A stretch of DNA of 21,313 nucleotides from Macrostomum lignano (Eukaryota): NCBI GenBank assembly GCA_002269645.1, contig NIVC01002194.1, forward strand, positions 1 to 21,313, written 5' to 3'. Shown piece by piece: positions 1-21,313 of this stretch. Under the pieces are notes generated by a model. That model saw only the letters and a program-made list of their open reading frames with translations, was not told the DNA's origin and made no database searches. The position numbers and the translations under genes are program-made. Each line of letters starts with the position of its first letter. Position 1 is the first letter of the stretch.

Positions 1-177
1 CGAGCACAGTAAAGCTACGGAGGCCAAGCACAGAGCGGCACCGACGGCCGTAACGATAACAGCTGGCACGTCATTGGCCAGGCTGACGGACAGCCAGGCC
101 AGAGGCGCGGCAGCCAGGCAGAGTGACAGCTGCAGCGCCGCGAAGCAGAACCAGAAGCGGCGTTCGTCAGTTTTCAT
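1..177 (-). CDS. N-terminal part of an unidentified hydrophobic (probably multi-pass membrane) protein, running off the left edge
   Basis: ATG at 177-175 in AAAAAC-ATG context (similar to TAAAAC-ATG of the Rho gene). The frame is open for 59 codons to the window edge: MKTDERRFWFCFAALQLSLCLAAAPLAWLSVSLANDVPAVIVTAVGAALCLASVALLCS. It is GC-rich against AT-rich flanks and has two hydrophobic segments. No family recognised. Confidence 0.55.
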   Translation of the reverse strand, partial: MKTDERRFWFCFAALQLSLCLAAAPLAWLSVSLANDVPAVIVTAVGAALCLASVALLCS

Positions 178-697
178 GTTTTTAGGCTCATGTAAGAGTC
201 ACACTCTGCACTAGGCTGGGCTGGGGCCCCTGTAGCCTAAAACTCTGTCGATTTTATTTCATAATTGCCGTTGATAAGAGCCGTTCAGATAAAGAGATCA
301 GCGCTGAGCGGAGAGATCTGGCGAGAAAAACATTGAACGCGCAACATTTCTCCATGTGAGTTCGTTTACATGAGCACAGTATCTAACTAGATCATTTCTA
401 ACCAAGAAACTGAAATGTACAATTACGCGAAATACACGACTTTCAGTAGAAGAAAGCTACGCTTGCAAAATCGTGCAAAATTTCCCTTGAGGCTGCATGT
501 TGATAGGAAGTTTTTTTTGTGTTTCTCAACACTAAACTGACACTACATGTATCTCACCATATGCTCTTTCAAATGTTGCAAATCAAGCAATTAGTGTGCA
601 TTTGTTTTCCTAGCTCAGTTCCCAAGTTTCTTAATCTTTGAAGTAAACAAGTTTGTTAAGTGACCAAAGTTTTAAAGATATTTCAGCCGGGTTTGTC

Positions 698-2078: not shown

Positions 2079-2084
2079 TTTATT
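2079..2084 (-). terminator. Candidate polyadenylation signal AATAAA of the neuropeptide gene
   Basis: TTTATT on the plus strand, about 190 nt downstream of the stop codon at 2277-2279. Confidence 0.5.
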
Positions 2085-2276: not shown

Positions 2277-2313
2277 TCAAGGCAGGCCGCCGCTGCTTCG
2301 CTTCCGTCTGCCG
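2277..2313 (-). CDS. Neuropeptide precursor, coding exon 3 ((S)[11 protein letters not shown])
   Basis: Acceptor ATTTCATTTTTCATGTCGTCAATTCAG| ends at 2314. The phase-2 junction AG+C gives Ser. TGA is at 2279-2277. Confidence 0.75.
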
Positions 2314-4718
2314 CTGAATTGACGACATGAAAAATGAAATGATGAGGCGTGCCCTACGATTCGTACTGAAAATTTGCATTGTTTGTCTAAAAAAACATTT
2401 TAAAACCACACTTGTACCCGTTCTACAGTACTATGGACAGCTACTAGAATAACCAGATGGGCCACTCAGCACATTTGCGTGTAAGCTACTTTCAGTTCAG
2501 TAGTAAATTAAACAGAAGCATTTTAATGTATTTTTAAGCCAAGGCTCCTTTATCGGTTCTTACCCCCCTCCCAGCTTAAACCCTCCAACCGTGCCTTACC
2601 ACACTACCCCCCCGCCCCGCCGCAATTTTTATCGCCTTTCTTGGAATTCCAGTCTAAAGCTGCTATGTACATTTCAGTGGACTGGCTAATGTACATTATG
2701 GCTGAACCAATTAGCAAGTTGTTTACGCCTGCAAGCTTGGGCTTCTAAACTTATCAAAAGTCATTTCAGCTGCTTTTATTTTTATAAAATAGCTTATATT
2801 TTCTTCTTTGCTACTGAACTGATAGTAGAAAGCAGTTTTACTATGTATATATGCCTGAGTGGCTCATCTAGTTATTTTAGTATCTGTGCTCCAACCTAAG
2901 GACTACTTAAGTAGGATGGGGAACTTCTTTTTAAATACTTTTTTAGACAACATCCACGATCTTCAATCAATCTCGTCAGCTGTTATTATTTTTGTGTTGA
3001 AAAATTTAAAAGCTCCATCTCCGTATTGTATTTTTCGGGTAAAACCAGGATCTTATGACTTTTCTCAGAACCAAAGTCTCCCGTCCTTGCTTCTACCCTG
3101 CATTTCTACCGCAACTTGGAGCTGCTGCCCTATCAGAGCAGCAGAGTGAACTGGAAGAACAGCCTGATTAAATGGCTGCCTCAGTGGGAGGGATTGACGC
3201 AGTCAGCTGCGTACTAACCGTGGTCAACTCTGCTTAACTAGCAGCTACTCGGCTAGCAACTTGCCTGCATAGGACATTACGAGTATATTAGAGAGCAGCA
3301 GTCCTGCAAAGCCTCACCTGGCATTGAGGTCGATGCCGTACTGGCCACCGCCGGTGCCCGCACCGCCCAGGGAGGCCAGAAGGTCGGCAATGCGATGATC
3401 GGAGCTCAGGCGCTTCACGGCTCTGCAGAGAGACCGCAGTACAGTGGATCACTCTATTGAACTAACAGATCCTTCAGTAAGTCTACTGGCACTCCATGAT
3501 AGACATCCAGATGGTATAATAGGCTAGGTGGTTTATGTCCCACCACCTGTGGTCTAAGCCATGGAGCATGGCTGGTCGATCGCTATCAAAATTTGTATCA
3601 CCAAGAAAATTTGTTTTCCTTATCTCATCTGAACTGATCCTGGAGAAGCCTTAAAAATTGGCGAGCATGCGGCATGAAATTTGCTAACGTGGCTTCCGAT
3701 AAGGCGGTGCATCGATGTCGAAGGACCTTCGGGTTCCTGTGACCCGGAGGATTACAGAGGCTCAGCCGCCGTCCAGCTAATGAGATCCTGTCTTCGATTC
3801 TCGTCTCTTCTCAAGCGCCTCAAGTCGCTCAACGTGCTGAACAGTTGGGGCTTCCTCTTGCTTCCCTCTCTGGCAAGCGCAAGGCTCAAATTAAAAAAAG
3901 AAGAAAATTGAAAAAAGCAATCCGAGCTGAACGGAAAATACTGCATGGGGGTGGGGGACGCCGAACAGGACTGGCAAAAAAACTGTTGGAATTCTCCAGA
4001 ATCTCTAAAAGAGATCGGAAATGAATTCTGAAGTGGTTGCTCTGCAGGGCGACTGGCTGACACTTAAGCTCGTCCCTCGTATTTGCAGTGCAGGTAAGAC
4101 AATCCACCTATTCAAACAGCAGACCAGCTTTGATTGCGAGCCGATCGACGATGATGGTTCTCTCGAACTAATAACTTTTTCCCTTGGCATACGCCAGTGA
4201 GTTTATCTCGTATTGACACCTGACTGAACCCCCAAAGCAGTTGAAAACGGTGGAAACGCATGCGAACAAGCATGTCATACAATGAAAATTGTCCTAATAC
4301 ACAGTTTCTCTTTCAATTCGGGAGCTTTGTACTCAATTCTACTCTGCATCGCGACTACCGCGCTATACAGATCCCTGGATTTGAGCACGAAAACATTGGT
4401 CTGGGACTTTCCGCGCGATTCACGAGCCTTGAGGGCCAACCCAGAAGGCACAGACCGGTGTGTAATAGGAAGAGCGAGAGTGTGCCTGCGTGCGTATCCA
4501 TGCGCGTGGTCAGAGGTCTTCCTTGGCTGCCGGTCAACTGACGTCTTGAAAAATACAATATTTCTGAATCTAAAAAACGAATCAATTTGGGAACGCGCAA
4601 GAATCACACTGACTTACTGAAGCTCCTCGAATTCGTCGCTGTTAGCAGCAGGTGCGGCAAACGCGAGGCCCAACAGCAGGCAGGCCGCGAACATGATCAG
4701 CGCCAACTTCTTCTCCAT
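2277..4718 (-). CDS. Neuropeptide precursor, iPTH/PXXXamide-like; join of complement 4618-4718, 3318-3422, 2277-2313; 80 aa
   Basis: Spliced product: [80 protein letters not shown]. The exons sum to 101+105+37=243 nt, both introns are GT-AG and all phases match (2/2). It has a signal peptide, a dibasic cleavage site, an amidation Gly and a tetrabasic site. The family call rests on my recall of the SDxRIAxL...G-polybasic pattern, not on a search. Confidence 0.8.
2436..2888. mobile_element. P-like MITE copy B, inverted relative to copy A, without the nested insertion, in intron 2 of the neuropeptide gene
   Basis: TIR cores AGATGGGCCACTCAG (2455-2469) and CTGAGTGGCTCATCT (2855-2869). The interior is the reverse complement of 698-982 plus 1558-1714, with scattered substitutions and indels. 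No TSD could be found and the left terminus is degenerate. Confidence 0.78.
3318..3422 (-). CDS. Neuropeptide precursor, coding exon 2 ([34 protein letters not shown])
   Basis: Acceptor GGTCTCTCTGCAG| ends at 3423 and donor CAG|GTGAGG starts at 3317. The 105-nt exon is phase 2/2 and GC3-rich. Confidence 0.85.
4618..4718 (-). CDS. Neuropeptide precursor, coding exon 1 (signal peptide and acidic propeptide)
   Basis: ATG at 4718 in ACAGC-ATG-G context. It reads [33 protein letters not shown]. Donor CA|GTAAGT starts at 4617. Confidence 0.85.
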
Positions 4719-5090
4719 GCTGTTATCGCGGTAAAGCAAGTGATTCTCTCTGAAACCATGCCGGACATGGGAAGAAAGTTGCGACAGATGCAAAAAGAAA
4801 TTCAATAGGATGGTGCGAGCTTGAGTTTCTGAGTCGCCCCCCCCACAAACTCCTACGATCGGCTTTCAACAGCTGATCAGTCCCACTGGAGACGAGGTGG
4901 ACAGCCAGAGGGGAGAGTGATTTGCATTATCGACCCAATTACTGGCCCAGAATTTGATTACGCATTGACTGCTCAAACTCGAGTAGAGATTGAATTCCAT
5001 CACTGCGTGGCAATCCTGGGCTGGGTAAAACTAGACGAAGATTCTGACAGATAACATGGCGCACAAAGTGAGCCGCCGTCTTTAACTTAC

Positions 5091-5190
5091 TTGGAGCAGA
5101 TTGAAAATAATTCCGTCGGGTTCTCCCGCTGTTCGGCTTTTTTTGGCAAATTCCTTGACGCAACGGAGCTGTGAGAGAGACAGCTCGGCT
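5091..5190 (-). other. Candidate non-coding 5' exon of the neuropeptide gene (upstream boundary approximate)
   Basis: Consensus donor CAA|GTAAGT at 5090-5085 and acceptor GGTTTCAG| at 4750, 31 nt before the ATG, would define a 5'UTR intron. There is no transcript evidence. Confidence 0.4.
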
Positions 5191-5803: not shown

Positions 5804-6582
5804 TTAAAAAGTCGGAAGAAGGTATGGGATGTGGTAGAACAAATCCTTCGACCAGTAACTGTTCAATTCAGGCTTCTTGTTTAGTGCCATGTAGAGCACA
5901 ATGCCCACAAACTTCCGAATTTCATTTGGGCTACAGTCCTTCCACTGACATACCCTGTGCGGCACATCCGGCTCTTCCTGCACATTCACGTACTCCTTCC
6001 AAGCTCTCGCATTTGTCCAGTCCGAAAGACGCTGAAACATGTTACCTGTCAAGAACTTCTCGACGAAGAAAGATTCATTATCATCGGCTTGGTCCGGCAG
6101 ATTCCAGGATGGATTGCAGCCAGTTGTTCTCAGAAATTCGAGACATTGATCCGGTCGTTCGTCGTCGTGCTCCGACACAATGTTCCAGGCTTCCTGTTGT
6201 TCCACAATTTCGTCTTCTTCTTGCTCCAAATTGGCCTCTATAGTGACTGACGCGAAACCGAGATAATTTGCTGAGTAAGACTTCGGCCCCGACTTGGGCA
6301 TTGATTGCGATATATATATTTAAGAGCCAACCTAAGGGTTCGATACAAGAGAAAGTTACATCCAATTACACGTACACCAACATTGCACGTACATCAGCTC
6401 AATGTGCATTTGGAATAAAATAGCCCGCGAAGAGAATGAGGGTAGCCGTGTATAACAGCCTCATCCTCGGAGTCCGAGTCAGCGCTGTCGTTGATTTCAG
6501 ACTCGTCGGTGTCGGAATCGAGACCGAGTCTGCGTTTTGCGGCCAGTAAAGCCTGCCTTGGTGGAGGTCTTCTCGAAGCCAT
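5804..6582 (-). pseudogene. Truncated piggyBac (PGBD/DDE_Tnp_1_7-type) transposase, N-terminal part only
   Basis: An acidic N-terminus from ATG 6582 reads MASRRPPP..DSDTDESEINDSADSDSEDE. ORF 6301-5804 contains FVEKFLTGNMFQRLSDWTNARA..WKDCSPNEIRKFVGIVLYMALNKKPELNSYWSKD, typical of the region before the piggyBac catalytic core. The DDD core is absent and a stop separates the two parts. Confidence 0.8.
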
Positions 6583-6680: not shown

Positions 6681-8008
6681 CTCCGTCTGTCCGGAAAGTC
6701 GTGAGAATGTATTTAAAAACCAGTCAGAACTATCAGAAAACACGATAACTGTACTAGTTGGTAATGTAATCTCCCCTTGCGTTGATTACAGCTTGGAAAT
6801 GGTCAACGAGTCGCTGAACCTCTCTTTTCAAGCAATCGAAGTCAAGGCCTCTTGCCCATTGCAACGCAGCTTCTCGAACTTGATTGTGGTCGCTGAACAC
6901 TCGCCTGGAGAAATCAGTCTTCATCCAACTGAACAAAAAACGGTCGCAAAATTGAAGTCTGGGCTGTAAGGACTCTGAAACACCAGCTGAACTCCCGGGA
7001 CTCCATGTACTGCTGCATAGAACGAGCCACGTGAGGTCGCGCAATTGTCGGATGAATTGGCCTTGACCTGAGAGTACGCCATAGGTCTCCGGTGTGCCGA
7101 ATGAACTCAACTATGCCATTTGCATCAACAGTTTGCTTTGGGGCTGTGAATTCAATGGAGAAGCGCTTGTTTGGAGTAAAAGCAACCAGAAGCATTGTCT
7201 TTGCATTGCCGACTGAGTGCCTGACAACCTGGGGCCGATGATCCCCTTGGCCAAGCCAGCACCTGTTGTTTTGCTTTGTGCCAGTGTTGTTCAGGTATAT
7301 CACCCATGTCTCATCCTCCACCACGTACTTGTCACAAAAGTTTTCCATGCCCTCGTAAAAAAGCCTGCGAATTTGCTTGGCACAATTGATGCGAGCAGTC
7401 TTGTTCTCCTCGGATAGAGCATGCGGAACCCAGACAGCAGAAACGTTTCGAAGGTGCAAATCCTCAGTCAAAATTTCGTGCACTGTTGTTTTTCCAACTT
7501 CCAAAAAGTCAGCGAGGTCTCGGACACTAACTTTTTGATCCTCTTCAACAAGAGCTCGGCAGGTTTCGATCAGTTCCGCTGTCCTTGTTGACCGTGGCCG
7601 GCCAGTCCGAGGAGCTGAGACCGGGGGAAATTCTTCGTCACGGAACTTCGAATACCATCTGTAAACCGTTGACTGACCTGGTGCAGCATCTCCATAAACT
7701 TTGAGCAGCTCGTCATTGCAGCTGAGAGTGGAGATTCCAAGACGGTATCTAGCATAGGCATAACCCTGGAAGTCTTCCATTTTGAAGAACTCGCAGTCAA
7801 AATTTTCAAGCTTGATCACCGCGTTGCATTTGCTATTGAGCACTTTATACTGAGCTCGCTCCTGCCCCTTATTTTGCTACTAGAGTAACAAGGATTTTCA
7901 CCATAGACATATATGAGTCTATTATTGAACATTTCTGTGTGCCACCTCAACAGCTTGCTGTTTTCTTACTTAATTGACACATTCTCACGACTTTCCGGAC
8001 AGCCGAAG
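6681..8008 (-). mobile_element. Full-length mariner (Tc1/mariner, D,D34D) element, 1328 bp
   Basis: 30-bp TIRs CTCCGTCTGTCCGGAAAGTCGTGAGAATGT (6681-6710) and 7979-8008 differ by two mismatches. The TA TSD is at 6679-6680 and 8009-8010. Confidence 0.95.
6754..7780 (-). pseudogene. Mariner transposase, frameshifted in the catalytic domain
   Basis: Probable ATG at 7780 (MEDFQGY). It has an HTH region, GRPR linker, WVPHAL and EDETW. Frameshifts fall near 7045-7053, 6995 and 6950. Repairing them restores DNARPH..QSPYSPDFNxCDRFLF with 34 residues between the last two Asp. The C-terminus ends GDYITN* (stop 6756-6754). Confidence 0.92.
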
Positions 8009-11700: not shown

Positions 11701-13690
11701 GTTTTATTGCTTTATTTTTTTTCTGACCCATTAATCCACAATGGCAGCAGCATGATTACCATGATGTCGATGATTCAAATGTCTGGACTCAGCCCCTTGG
11801 CCTTGGCCCTCAGGCATGACTTAGCCTAGGTCTAGTTATAATATATAAATAATAAATATAAGCACTTTTAGGCTTGTGGCCAAGAATATTGCAGATATAC
11901 CACTGTTATTAGGTCAATTCTATGAATCTATCATGTTAGAGCCTATTTAAAGTGTTAAAAGTAGCACCTAAAATAGCAAAACTAGCTTTGTTTTGAATAG
12001 GCCTATTTTTAATTTTACCTTTTTAGACTAGGTCCTAGGTTTAGGTTAGGCTAACTTGCTAAAACTAAAGCCTAAAGGTCTTAGATTGTTATAGGCCTAA
12101 TATGACAATTTTGACTGTATTCATCTTAGACAAAAAATTTTTTACTCTATTGTCTATGCTCTCTAGTCTCTAGTTCCCATAGTCTCAAAGATGTTCCATG
12201 TTACCATGTATCATATATAGGCCTATACCATGAAACTTTTTGACCCTTGTACGTTGCACACCAAGATTATTTAGATATCTCATATGCACTGCACATTGCA
12301 TGTCAAGGGAATGGGAAGGGGCTTATCTACATTGGGTGCCACACACAAGACTAGTAGAAAAAGTTGAAAGCAAAAATGCACTCGTATTTTTTGGGGACTT
12401 TGCTTAAGTAAAAGCAGTGAAGCCTGTTTAAACAAATTAAATTCTTTCTTTTCCATGGATCAGATTACTTTTTTGTCTTTTATTGTATTGCAAAGTTACA
12501 AAAATATGTATGTTATATTAATTTATAATTATTTTTAAAAAATGTTATAATTATAAAAACTTTCATTTAAGACATTGCCAATTTTAAATATCCATGTCTA
12601 GCCAAATCCAAACCTCTATTTTATTTTTGAATCTATTTTGCATGCGGTTATATGCCAAATTTTTTTTGTAAGTATTGCTATATCTAAAGTCTCTTTGCAT
12701 ATATTATTGCATATTGCATAAGGGCCAAAAACCCTTATGCATGCCGCAACTTTGTGGAGAAAACAGCATCTTTGGAAGAGTGGTCTAGTTCTAATAGGCC
12801 TATATAGATGCTATTTAATTTTTCCAACGTAAAAAATATTCTGATTAATAGAACAATGAAATTGATAGATGCTACTTAGGCCTACCTTAAAAGCTAGAAA
12901 AACCAATTGCTAGTATATTTCTAGTATGCTTTTTTGCATATGTTGCTTAACTTTAAGAAAAAATAAGAGAGAAATTTTTACAAATGGCTAAATTGTAGGG
13001 CCTAAGGTTCACATTTCTTATACCTAGAAAAATTTTTTAATATGCTAGTAGACAGTTTCCATGCATTTTGCCTATGCTTTTTGGTACCCCAGATTGCTTT
13101 TTGGTATCCGGTATCCCAGTTTATGATGCCAAAATGATAGGGCCTAATAAAAAAGTAATCTAATCAATTTAATTGCATGCATTTGCTATATCCTATATAT
13201 ACAAATACAAAGTATACTTAGCAAGCATGCTATGAAGACTTGGTTAGGAAGTAAAGATAAAATCTATCAACAATGCTATATGTAGTTTTGATCAAATTCT
13301 ATGACTAGTCTATTATAATAATATTGATTTTTTGAATCACAAAATCATGTTTTATTTCTTGAGAAATCAAATCAAGAGAAAAAAATTAAATGAAATGAAC
13401 CTATTTTTTAATTAACACACTAGATAAGCTTAATAAACTGAATAATATCTTAGTTTTTAAAATAAATAAGTATTGCAAAAACAAAGCAATTACTGCTAAA
13501 TTAGGGCTCACTTTTTATATTTTTGTGTCTAATTCTAATTTATAATTTAGGCACCAAAAAGCAAGCTGAGGCATCAAAATACTAGGCACTGAAAAACATA
13601 GGCACCAAAAAGTGTGGATACCTAGCAGACTAAAGTTGATTGTTCTTTTGGCTCTTAAAGCAGGTGTCATTTACCAAATTTGCTATTCTA

Positions 13691-13860
13691 TTGATCAGAA
13701 TGTTTTCTATATTGGAAAAACCAAAAAATCATCTATATACTAGAGCTAGAGAGCATAGAATAAAAGTTTTTCTGTTTTATTAATCAGAATGTTTTGTATC
13801 TTGGAAAGACCAAATGATATTAGTATATACTTGAGCTAAAAAAGAATAGAAATTTCTGCT
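13691..13860. repeat. Diverged two-copy tandem duplication, period ~89 nt
   Basis: ATCAGAATGTTTT at 13694 and 13783, each followed by TTGGAAA.ACCAAA..TATATACT.GAGCTA. Confidence 0.7.
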
Positions 13861-14973
13861 GTCTAAGTCTACCTTAAATTGTGTTCAGCAACAATAACTT
13901 GATAAAGAATAAGAAATAATTTTCAAAGTAATTTTTTTAAATTAAATAATACAAAACTATAAATATATAAATATTTATGTATTTCAATCTTTATGATCAA
14001 TCAAATATATCAAAGATGTCAAACTATATATACACAACCTTTGAATTTGTTAGGCCTACTTACATATCCTAGTATTTTATTATAACTTATCATTCTTTGC
14101 ATTTTTTTCTTTTTGTATTTTTTCTTCATTCCATTGCTTTTTGTCTTATTTCATTTTTGGTTATAAATTTTATGACTTGTTCTTAGTCTGCCACTATTTA
14201 TCCTAGTTAGAGCCACCATATCTATGCAAAGAACCTAGCTGATCTAAGCATTTTCATAGTAGCACATTGCGCAACCAATCAACCCAAGGCTAAATAAGTA
14301 AGTTGCACATAAAATAAAAACATTAAGAATGAATAAAAGAAAGAATAAAAGAAAAGCCTACATTTGTGATCAAATCAAGAGAGAGAAGCCAGAGAGAAGA
14401 TAGAAAGGATAGAGAGAAGAGAAAAGATTAAAATTGGATATAGAGCAAAGCTATATTTCAAAATGCTTTGTAGATATCAGTGTCTCATATTTTTATATTG
14501 ATATGTTTTACTATGTTACACTAGCCAGGTAAAATTTAGATTGCAAAGGTATGGTCAGCCAGTAGGCTAGCAGTTGTGCATGTATGTTCCAGTCCCTTTG
14601 ACTTTAATTTTTTATATAGAAGTTTTTTTATAAAATATAATTTTTAGTTCATTGACCTCAAATAGTTAAAGTAGGCTGGGGAAGTATGGCCACATAGAAT
14701 GTGAAAGACAGTTAGTTTCCTCAAGGTTATAGTTAATTACAAATAAGCTAAAATTATTGGTGGCATAAATATCTAGCCACTATTTAGAATAAAGGCTCAG
14801 TCTATGAAGCAGCTCTATATTAAACTTAGTTCTAGTTTTTGATTTGCAAATATAGTTTGTGCTGTCTGTTTTATACTTTCATTAGTTTGATTTTGATATT
14901 ACATTTTCACTAATAAACTCTATTTATTGCATGACTAGATAGTAATAAGTTATCAAGTTTGGAATACACATAA

Positions 14974-15174
<201 letters not shown>

Positions 15175-15202: not shown

Positions 15203-15224
15203 TAACCCTAACCCTACCCCTAAC
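15203..15224. repeat. Short interstitial telomere-like repeat
   Basis: TAACCC TAACCC TACCCC TAAC, i.e. about 3.7 units of (CCCTAA)n with one mismatch. Confidence 0.5.
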
Positions 15225-15242
15225 GGCTATCATCATATCTCT

Positions 15243-21200: not shown

Positions 21201-21313
21201 TGTTGGAGCTATGGAGTGTCGGAGATATGGTGTGTCTGAGATTGAAGTGTCGGAGATATGGAGTGTCGGAGATATGGAGTGTCGGAGATATGGAGTGTCG
21301 GAGATATGGAGTG
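15243..21313 (+). repeat. Intronic G-rich satellite/minisatellite array of 15-16 nt units (roughly 380-390 units), continuing past the right edge
   Basis: The major unit is GGAGTGTCGGAGATAT. Variants are GGAGTGTCGGAGATGT, GGAGTGTCTGGGATT, GAAGTGTCGGATATT, GAAGTGTTGGAGCTAT, GGAGTGTCTGAGATT and GAAGTGTCGGAGATAT. The 16-aa period MECRRYGVSEIWSVGD in the ORF track equals 3 x 16 nt. The first units (15243-15330) are the most divergent. Confidence 0.98.

Follow-up and report, generated by a model that had tools for sequence, protein, structure and literature searches.

The 21,313-nt stretch of Macrostomum lignano DNA analysed here (the window; GenBank assembly GCA_002269645.1, contig NIVC01002194.1, positions 1 to 21,313) carries on its minus strand the gene Mlig026345, which very probably encodes a neuropeptide precursor and, as judged from its sequence, would belong, as a divergent member, to the protostome iPTH/PXXXamide/QSamide family (iPTH, invertebrate parathyroid-hormone-like peptide). 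This family is the recently recognised protostome counterpart of vertebrate parathyroid hormone (PTH)-receptor signalling, and its published range comprises arthropods, tardigrades, onychophorans, molluscs, annelids, nemerteans, brachiopods and phoronids. Flatworms evolve fast, 'hidden orthologues' are a notorious feature of theirs, and most names in their neuropeptide catalogues are lineage-specific.

Re-splicing of the window reproduced exactly what the first-pass annotation had proposed for this gene, namely its coordinates, its phase-matched GT-AG splicing and an 80-aa precursor with a signal peptide, an acidic spacer, a KR site, a 31-mer and a G-RRKR site. The coding sequence (CDS) is composed of three minus-strand segments of 101, 105 and 37 nt, the last of which ends in TGA, and together these form a 243-nt open reading frame (ORF) that translates to the 80-aa precursor and whose ATG is preceded by an in-frame stop. 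Both CDS introns are of the GT-AG type, interrupt the frame in phase 2 and have junctions of good consensus (Table 1). The gene had been presented as hidden, and it was indeed missed by the prokaryote-style ORF list, but it is already annotated publicly, though unnamed: the identical 80-aa protein is found in GenBank as PAA58761.1 ('hypothetical protein BOX15_Mlig026345g3', Macrostomum lignano), with the UniRef name 'Secreted protein'. Because the M. lignano annotation that holds this identical protein was derived from a transcriptome assembled with the genome as guide (StringTie/TACO on RNA-seq, with a de novo assembly added) and not ab initio (PMC5730564), the splice junctions are indirectly supported by transcripts, and the gene is far more than a chance ORF. 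The earlier description of a three-exon gene applied to the coding part only, since the sister model Mlig026345.g2 shows an extra 5′ non-coding exon, separated by an intron (5090-4750) and joined to position 4749. This exon was placed via the partial CDS of the g2 model, which reads through the untranslated region and mapped to 5167-5090 and 4748 onward. The transcript thus has at least four exons, three of which are coding.

The precursor begins with the features of a signal peptide, comprising a basic n-region (MEKK), a 17-residue hydrophobic core (residues 5-21, with a mean Kyte-Doolittle value of 2.7) and an AFA/A cleavage motif (slashes mark cleavage points or splice junctions throughout), and continues with an acidic spacer of net charge -4. 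A dibasic K37-R38 stands directly before the peptide start at L39, the peptide is followed by the amidation and cleavage site G70-R-R-K-R74, and only the six residues SSGGLP come after RRKR. The peptide itself is devoid of Cys and Gly-rich in its middle, and its N-terminal part is moderately amphipathic (hydrophobic moment 0.4-0.56). Following established prohormone processing, signal peptidase would cut after AFA (residue 21), a prohormone convertase would cut after K37-R38 and at the furin-type R71-R-K-R74, a carboxypeptidase would remove the basic residues, and the peptidylglycine alpha-amidating enzyme would turn G70 into a C-terminal amide. The predicted product is a single 31-residue amidated peptide with a monoisotopic mass of 2984.495 Da.

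Family profiles, paralogues and shared intron positions

The family features that the first-pass annotation had given agree with the published sequences of Xie et al. (2020; PMC7224569), in which the iPTH/PXXXamide pattern consists of KR or RR, xSD(Q/H)R(I/L)AE(L), a Gly-containing middle, (Y/H/F)G-x-x-D-P-x-x-x, and G followed by 3-4 basic residues. Reference sequences were taken from S1 Table of that paper, and a family hidden Markov model (HMM) was built from 35 published PXXXamide-type peptides including their cleavage sites, with the flatworm sequence left out. This model aligned globally to the M. lignano precursor, from KR through RRKR (model positions 1-44 to residues 37-74), with 21.0 bits and an E-value of 1.8e-8 per sequence, which corresponds to about 1e-3 for a proteome of 6e4. 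When the 31 interior residues were permuted while KR and GRRKR were held fixed, none of 50,000 shuffles matched the real score of 23.8 (shuffle maximum 21.5, mean 2.3; p < 2e-5). Of the 796 segments that a six-frame reading of the window gave, only the frame of exon 2 matched the iPTH HMM (15 bits, with the runner-up at 4.4). The resemblance to iPTH/PXXXamide precursors that had been claimed for this gene therefore stands above background, and it extends to the intron phases described below.

A lophotrochozoan-only HMM gave the flatworm peptide 20.6 bits, less than Tribolium iPTH (22.8), whose function has been validated, and more than Apis (14.1). Judged by these scores, the flatworm peptide lies at the divergent edge of the family while still falling inside the score range of accepted members. 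At its N-terminus, SSDHRIADL aligns to SSDQRIAEL; the His variant of this motif also occurs in Locusta, Bemisia and Cimex, and the Asp-for-Glu substitution also occurs in Tribolium.

Searching the precursor with phmmer against 1.84 billion representative sequences yielded five matches at E <= 0.001, the query included. Two of these were meaningful and both represent M. lignano paralogue families, namely Mlig012485/Mlig002734 and A0A1I8GKX0 (E-values of 3.4e-8 and 7.6e-4). The other candidates, a 2334-aa protein (P0004) matched in 15 stretches and a 519-aa tandemly repeated protein (P0005), were judged spurious. Across the three paralogue families the KR site is invariant, and most invariant columns fall in the N-terminal peptide block and in the C-terminal GQYGI.L.A.GR, the remaining ones being only the start Met and three scattered positions ahead of the KR site. 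Apart from these columns, the families diverge in signal peptide, in spacer and in linker, the linker varying in length as well as in sequence. The paralogues end in the amidation sites GRKKR and GRRR, with tails of 6 or 0 residues after the basic site, and the monoisotopic masses predicted for the two amidated paralogue peptides are 3314.686 and 4446.183 Da. None of the four precursors had a Pfam match, even with the cut-off at E 10. One paralogue (P0010) carries the automatic UniRef name 'Gastrin domain-containing protein', which looks spurious given that it has no Pfam match up to E 10.

The analysis assigned the window to contig NIVC01002335.1 of the same assembly, and further copies of the gene (model g2) lie in three places on two other contigs. 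The copy at locus L002 is 100% identical to the window over 3.2 kb and is thus uninformative on selection, so that the older paralogue at locus L009 was used instead. L009 has the same structure of three coding exons with phase-2/phase-2 introns, and its flanking introns cannot be aligned with those in the window. Between the two loci, the two peptide blocks differ by 7 synonymous versus 4 nonsynonymous (mostly conservative) codon changes, and the linker by 1 synonymous versus 6 nonsynonymous changes. A bioactive peptide that is processed and has a functional part at either end would be expected to show this distribution.

In published mollusc and annelid transcripts, the variable part starts shortly ahead of the basic site and ends with the residue that precedes the amidating Gly, thereby implying a cassette exon. 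Genomic DNA was inspected at four loci found with the family profile, beside the flatworm window, and at every locus compared the donor splits the codon in front of the amidating Gly between its second and third bases, i.e. in phase 2 (Table 1). The upstream acceptor likewise lies in phase 2, 2-3 codons ahead of the basic site, in the three loci with that intron. For arthropods and molluscs, dozens of ORF calls confined to one exon terminate in M or L right at the pre-Gly intron, which is what read-through into AT/GT or CT/GT would produce. This phase-2 architecture of the peptide exon is a family feature derived here from the data and not a published definition. Both the position and the phase of the introns are kept on either side of the peptide exon, which is hard to explain by convergence.

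Rival readings and comparison with known peptides

Spiralian PXXXamide precursors (Sepia officinalis; PYKIamide/PALIamide of Crassostrea gigas; Capitella, Notospermus and Lingula) share with the flatworm precursor the signal peptide, the short spacer, the dibasic site, the xSSD(Q/H)RIA(E/D)L N-terminus, the Gly-rich middle, the (H/Y)G-x-(I/V)-D-x-x-x-x block, the G plus tetrabasic site, and a phase-2/phase-2 peptide exon with the amidating Gly on the next exon. The flatworm peptide region is 43-50% identical to that of Capitella, Sepia and Crassostrea. It differs from the spiralian peptides by His for Gln at position 5, Asp for Glu at position 9, and LLASL instead of QALIAL. Arthropod iPTH has in common with the flatworm peptide its precursor logic, the SD-x-R/H-L/I-A-E/D-L motif, a YG(I/V)ID-type C-terminal block and the G plus basic site, and Tribolium iPTH, which also has ADL, is about as far from the spiralian profile as the flatworm peptide is (the 22.8 versus 20.6 bits given above). 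The middle of arthropod iPTH is longer (KMKGKLVTVPVGFG) and Lys-rich, whereas that of the flatworm peptide is Gly-rich. Receptor activation and a cuticle/eclosion phenotype have been demonstrated only for arthropod iPTH. The iPTH of Ixodes ricinus and its receptors are reportedly the topic of a 2026 preprint.

Several observations weigh against placing the flatworm peptide in this family. At database scale the match is weak, in that iPTH-only profiles would give an E-value of about 100 across 5.8 billion sequences, and an arthropod-only HMM gave the flatworm peptide 12.2 bits (Phoronis, 17.1). No orthologue from another flatworm was found by a word-indexed search, by phmmer against the 1.84 billion representatives, or by Mlig-paralogue and combined family profiles against 5.8 billion proteins. 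These wider searches returned only M. lignano proteins and non-flatworm proteins of the iPTH type, and none of the 60 matches from outside M. lignano carried the flatworm signature. Within the peptide, the name-giving Pro at -4 is replaced by Leu (D-L-N-A-S-amide), one residue fewer separates YG (spiralian (H/Y)G) from D, and the C-terminal residue (a Ser or Asn amide, versus Ile or Ala amide in spiralian PXXXamides) is QSamide-like, yet the QSamide Cys pair is absent. Finally, the C-terminal extension is only 6 aa long compared with 30-60 aa in other phyla (a conserved 30-50 aa in spiralian PXXXamides), an extension that the papers cited here do not state to be defining. The absence of Pro was not treated as disqualifying, because Xie et al. 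grade this residue as 'mildly conserved' (PMC7224569), and accepted members also carry Leu, Val or Phe at this position (DLEKI in Centruroides 2, NLDEI in Clitarchus, DVDAI in Octopus and DFNKI in Orchesella). The C-terminal Gly and the basic residues after it, which are strictly conserved in the family, are present in the flatworm precursor.

The QSamide-like C-terminus raises the question of which branch of the family the peptide belongs to. QSamide/QSGamide peptides, which in annelids, molluscs and brachiopods arise as alternative exon products or from paralogues, share with the flatworm peptide the gene family, the exon logic and a C-terminal ...(I/V)D-x-x-A-S-amide. The flatworm gene could thus be a family member without being of the PXXXamide/iPTH type, either as the descendant of an undivided ancestor or as a QSamide-type cassette whose disulfide was lost, and its receptor and function might then differ from those of insect iPTH. 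We consider this unlikely. It would account for the likeness of ...IDLNAS-G to the QSamide-type ...VDIAAS-G and ...VDVEAS-G, for the likeness of RIADLLASL to RLADMLASI of Phoronis transcript 1, and for the 14.1 bits with which the QSamide-type (Cys-containing) HMM still aligned to the flatworm peptide from end to end; the presence of one peptide exon per gene points the same way, in that none of the 148 phase-compatible AG...GT candidates in both introns constituted an alternative QSamide-type cassette exon such as mollusc and annelid PXXXamide genes possess. However, the PXXXamide-type HMM scored above the QSamide-type HMM (21.0 versus 14.1 bits), the flatworm N-terminus SSD(H/Q)RIA(D/E)L is the PXXXamide signature, and the Cys...CG pair that defines QSamides, which begin with RQ-x-(A/G)-D and form a C-x5-C-G disulfide loop, is missing from all three of the Cys-free paralogue families.

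That the peptide is instead a lineage-specific amidated neuropeptide of macrostomids, with a merely convergent resemblance to iPTH, appears improbable, since convergence on sequence would not place introns of the same phase at the same points before and after the peptide exon in four phyla. The global alignment, moreover, places both conserved blocks in the right order, and shuffles in which the cleavage sites were retained gave p < 2e-5. These observations have to be set against the facts that short amphipathic N-termini and G plus basic sites are common among neuropeptides, that queries built from M. lignano sequences alone found no match outside this species, that arthropod-only profiles score the flatworm peptide low, and that Pfam holds no model for the iPTH family that could arbitrate. 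We give hardly any credence to a PDF/cerebrin-type or other class-B-ligand-type peptide (I-x-x-L-L-x-S-L), or to a small secreted protein other than a neuropeptide. PDF/cerebrin peptides are amidated 18-20-mers of the type NSE(L/I)INS(L/I)LG(L)P. IADLLASL is superficially like INSLLSL of PDF, but an HMM of eight PDF/cerebrin peptides gave 2.3 bits with fragmentary local matches and no global alignment, and the PDF/cerebrin reading was rejected on this score. Conservation among the paralogues is, furthermore, largely confined to the segment from KR to G-RRKR, which is the signature of a processed peptide and not of a folded secreted protein. Membership of Mlig026345 in the iPTH/PXXXamide/QSamide family hence remains the reading that we favor.

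Candidate receptors and phyletic range

Tribolium iPTH activates two PTH-receptor-like G-protein-coupled receptors (GPCRs) of class B1, iPTHR1/2 (PMC7224569), so that the signalling route named in the first-pass annotation has been established for this beetle; the pairing of the lophotrochozoan peptides with a PTHR-like receptor is assumed and stated as unproven (PMC8557429). By analogy with Tribolium iPTH, the most likely role of the flatworm peptide would be that of a secreted neuro-hormone whose receptor is a PTH-receptor-like GPCR of class B1. In such a complex the conserved N-terminal block would be the part that contacts the receptor core, the conserved, amidated C-terminal block (GQYGIDLxAS-NH2) would attach to the extracellular domain, and the variable Gly-rich linker would connect the two. 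Two blocks joined by a flexible Gly-rich linker would be in keeping with binding at two sites, as is the mode of class B1 ligands. We infer not only this receptor but also the cleavage and amidation of the flatworm peptide, the cell type that would release it and its physiological role. With vertebrate PTH, PTHrP and TIP39, the common ground consists of a presumed class B1 PTHR-related receptor and a two-block ligand design (an activating N-terminus and a binding C-terminus), without detectable sequence similarity to the flatworm peptide. Even iPTH itself is less than 12% identical to human PTH, PTHrP and TIP39 (Xie et al., PMC7224569), and the name 'iPTH' reflects receptor orthology, not ligand homology.

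The table of Xie et al. 2020 lists nemerteans, brachiopods, phoronids, molluscs, annelids, a tardigrade, an onychophoran and many arthropods, and no flatworms (PMC7224569). The first-pass annotation had raised the possibility that the host lineage has no described member, and in agreement with this we found no flatworm iPTH member in the searchable literature using peptide strings, gene identifiers and, for the family names, the titles of 40 of the 53 papers that mention them, a search outside of which Koziol et al. 2016 and other subscription-journal flatworm catalogues fall, where a member might bear an 'npp-' name. The named iPTH-type proteins retrieved in our searches (from spiders, mites, millipedes, insects, a crab, a snail and the annelid Dimorphilus) are all called 'hypothetical' or 'uncharacterized', and most metagenome and Logan gene calls of the iPTH type end at the phase-2 intron. 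Because of these names and truncated gene calls, the family is systematically unannotated, and it has no Pfam model.

As a new divergent member, the M. lignano gene would extend the iPTH/PXXXamide family to Platyhelminthes, a gain that is incremental rather than conceptual. A member in an early-branching flatworm would widen the phyletic range of the family and would supply a concrete ligand for flatworm class B receptors, including the Schistosoma one with PTH-receptor homology. This schistosome receptor, SMP170560, has an HRM domain and is accompanied by a planarian fragment (PMC3261222). A broader reading, which we regard as plausible although the balance tips slightly against it, is that the flatworm peptide and its two paralogue families are the first platyhelminth PTHR-like (cluster B) ligands, that the iPTH/PXXXamide system predates the split between flatworms and other spiralians, and that these peptides are a candidate ligand class for the orphan PTH-receptor-like GPCRs of schistosomes and planarians. 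They might perhaps even represent the state before the two cassette exons diverged, given that a PXXXamide-type N-terminus, a QSamide-type C-terminus and a single peptide exon are combined in them. Interest in this gene is mainly for neuropeptide evolution and for the deorphanisation of flatworm GPCRs. M. lignano is a tractable model with transgenesis and RNAi, and its three paralogous peptides, with the same two blocks and differing linker length, constitute a natural structure-activity series.

Feature coordinates and the rest of the window

Table 1. Features of the Mlig026345 peptide gene in the window, and donor sites in the codon before the amidating Gly at the loci compared
Feature	Position or locus	Strand	Details
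5′ non-coding exon	5091..5167	-	from sister model Mlig026345.g2; donor GTAAGT at 5090
Start-codon exon (ATG 4718; CDS part 4718-4618; signal peptide and acidic spacer)	4618..4749	-	acceptor ttcAG/A 4751-4750; donor TCA/GTAAGT, phase 2
CDS intron 1, 1195 nt, GT...AG, phase 2	3423..4617	-	donor TCA/GTAAGT; acceptor ctctgcAG/A
Peptide exon, 105 nt, symmetric phase 2/2; (Q)AVKR, then 30 peptide residues and (S)	3318..3422	-	top iPTH-HMM match in window
CDS intron 2, 1004 nt, GT...AG, phase 2; splits codon just before amidating Gly	2314..3317	-	donor CAG/GTGAGG; acceptor caattcAG/C
Last coding exon: amidation donor Gly, tetrabasic furin-type site, 6-aa tail	2277..2313	-	37 nt, TGA end
AATAAA candidate polyadenylation signal, ~190 nt past stop	2079..2084	-	motif only
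Donor in codon before amidating Gly	oyster-like contig L007		AT/GTAGGT
Donor in codon before amidating Gly	snail-like contig L008		AT/GTAGGT
Donor in codon before amidating Gly	annelid Dimorphilus L006		AT/GTAAGG
Donor in codon before amidating Gly	spider Caerostris L005		CT/GTAGGT
Donor in codon before amidating Gly	flatworm window		AG/GTGAGG

Intron 2 of the peptide gene contains a dispersed repeat (window ~2437-2885), of which copies with 88-93% identity are found at L002 9455-9619 and 10178-10468, a few kb downstream of the paralogous gene copy (L002, contig NIVC01002194.1). Just downstream of the peptide gene lies an annotated, Pfam-negative gene of 192 aa, which starts at window 1-298 (-) and runs past the window start (L001 14421-14999); the paralogous copy in L002 has this neighbor behind it as well. 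Remnants of transposons are present upstream of the peptide gene at window 5804-6301 (-) and 6914-7876 (-), namely a PiggyBac-type DDE_Tnp_1_7 fragment (E 1e-11) and, as a second remnant, an ORF with Mos1/HTH_32-type helix-turn-helix matches just under the Pfam cut-offs.

Between this transposon-rich region and a small GTPase gene, an AT-rich stretch at window 12000-14500 has 27-31% G+C compared with 43-50% elsewhere. The GTPase is of the Rho family, and its first coding exon is located at window 14979-15134 (+) with a GTTAGT donor, where an annotated 193-aa gene with Ras/Arf/Roc Pfam matches starts. A short CCCTAA-type telomere-like stretch (window 15203-15228, +) is situated just inside the first intron of this gene. 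From window 15245 to the window end at 21313 (+), the DNA consists of a 16-nt satellite, AGTGTCGGAGATATGG, in approximately 386 copies with 86% matches and a GC skew of ~0.74, and the long plus-strand ORFs in this satellite region are repeat artefacts.

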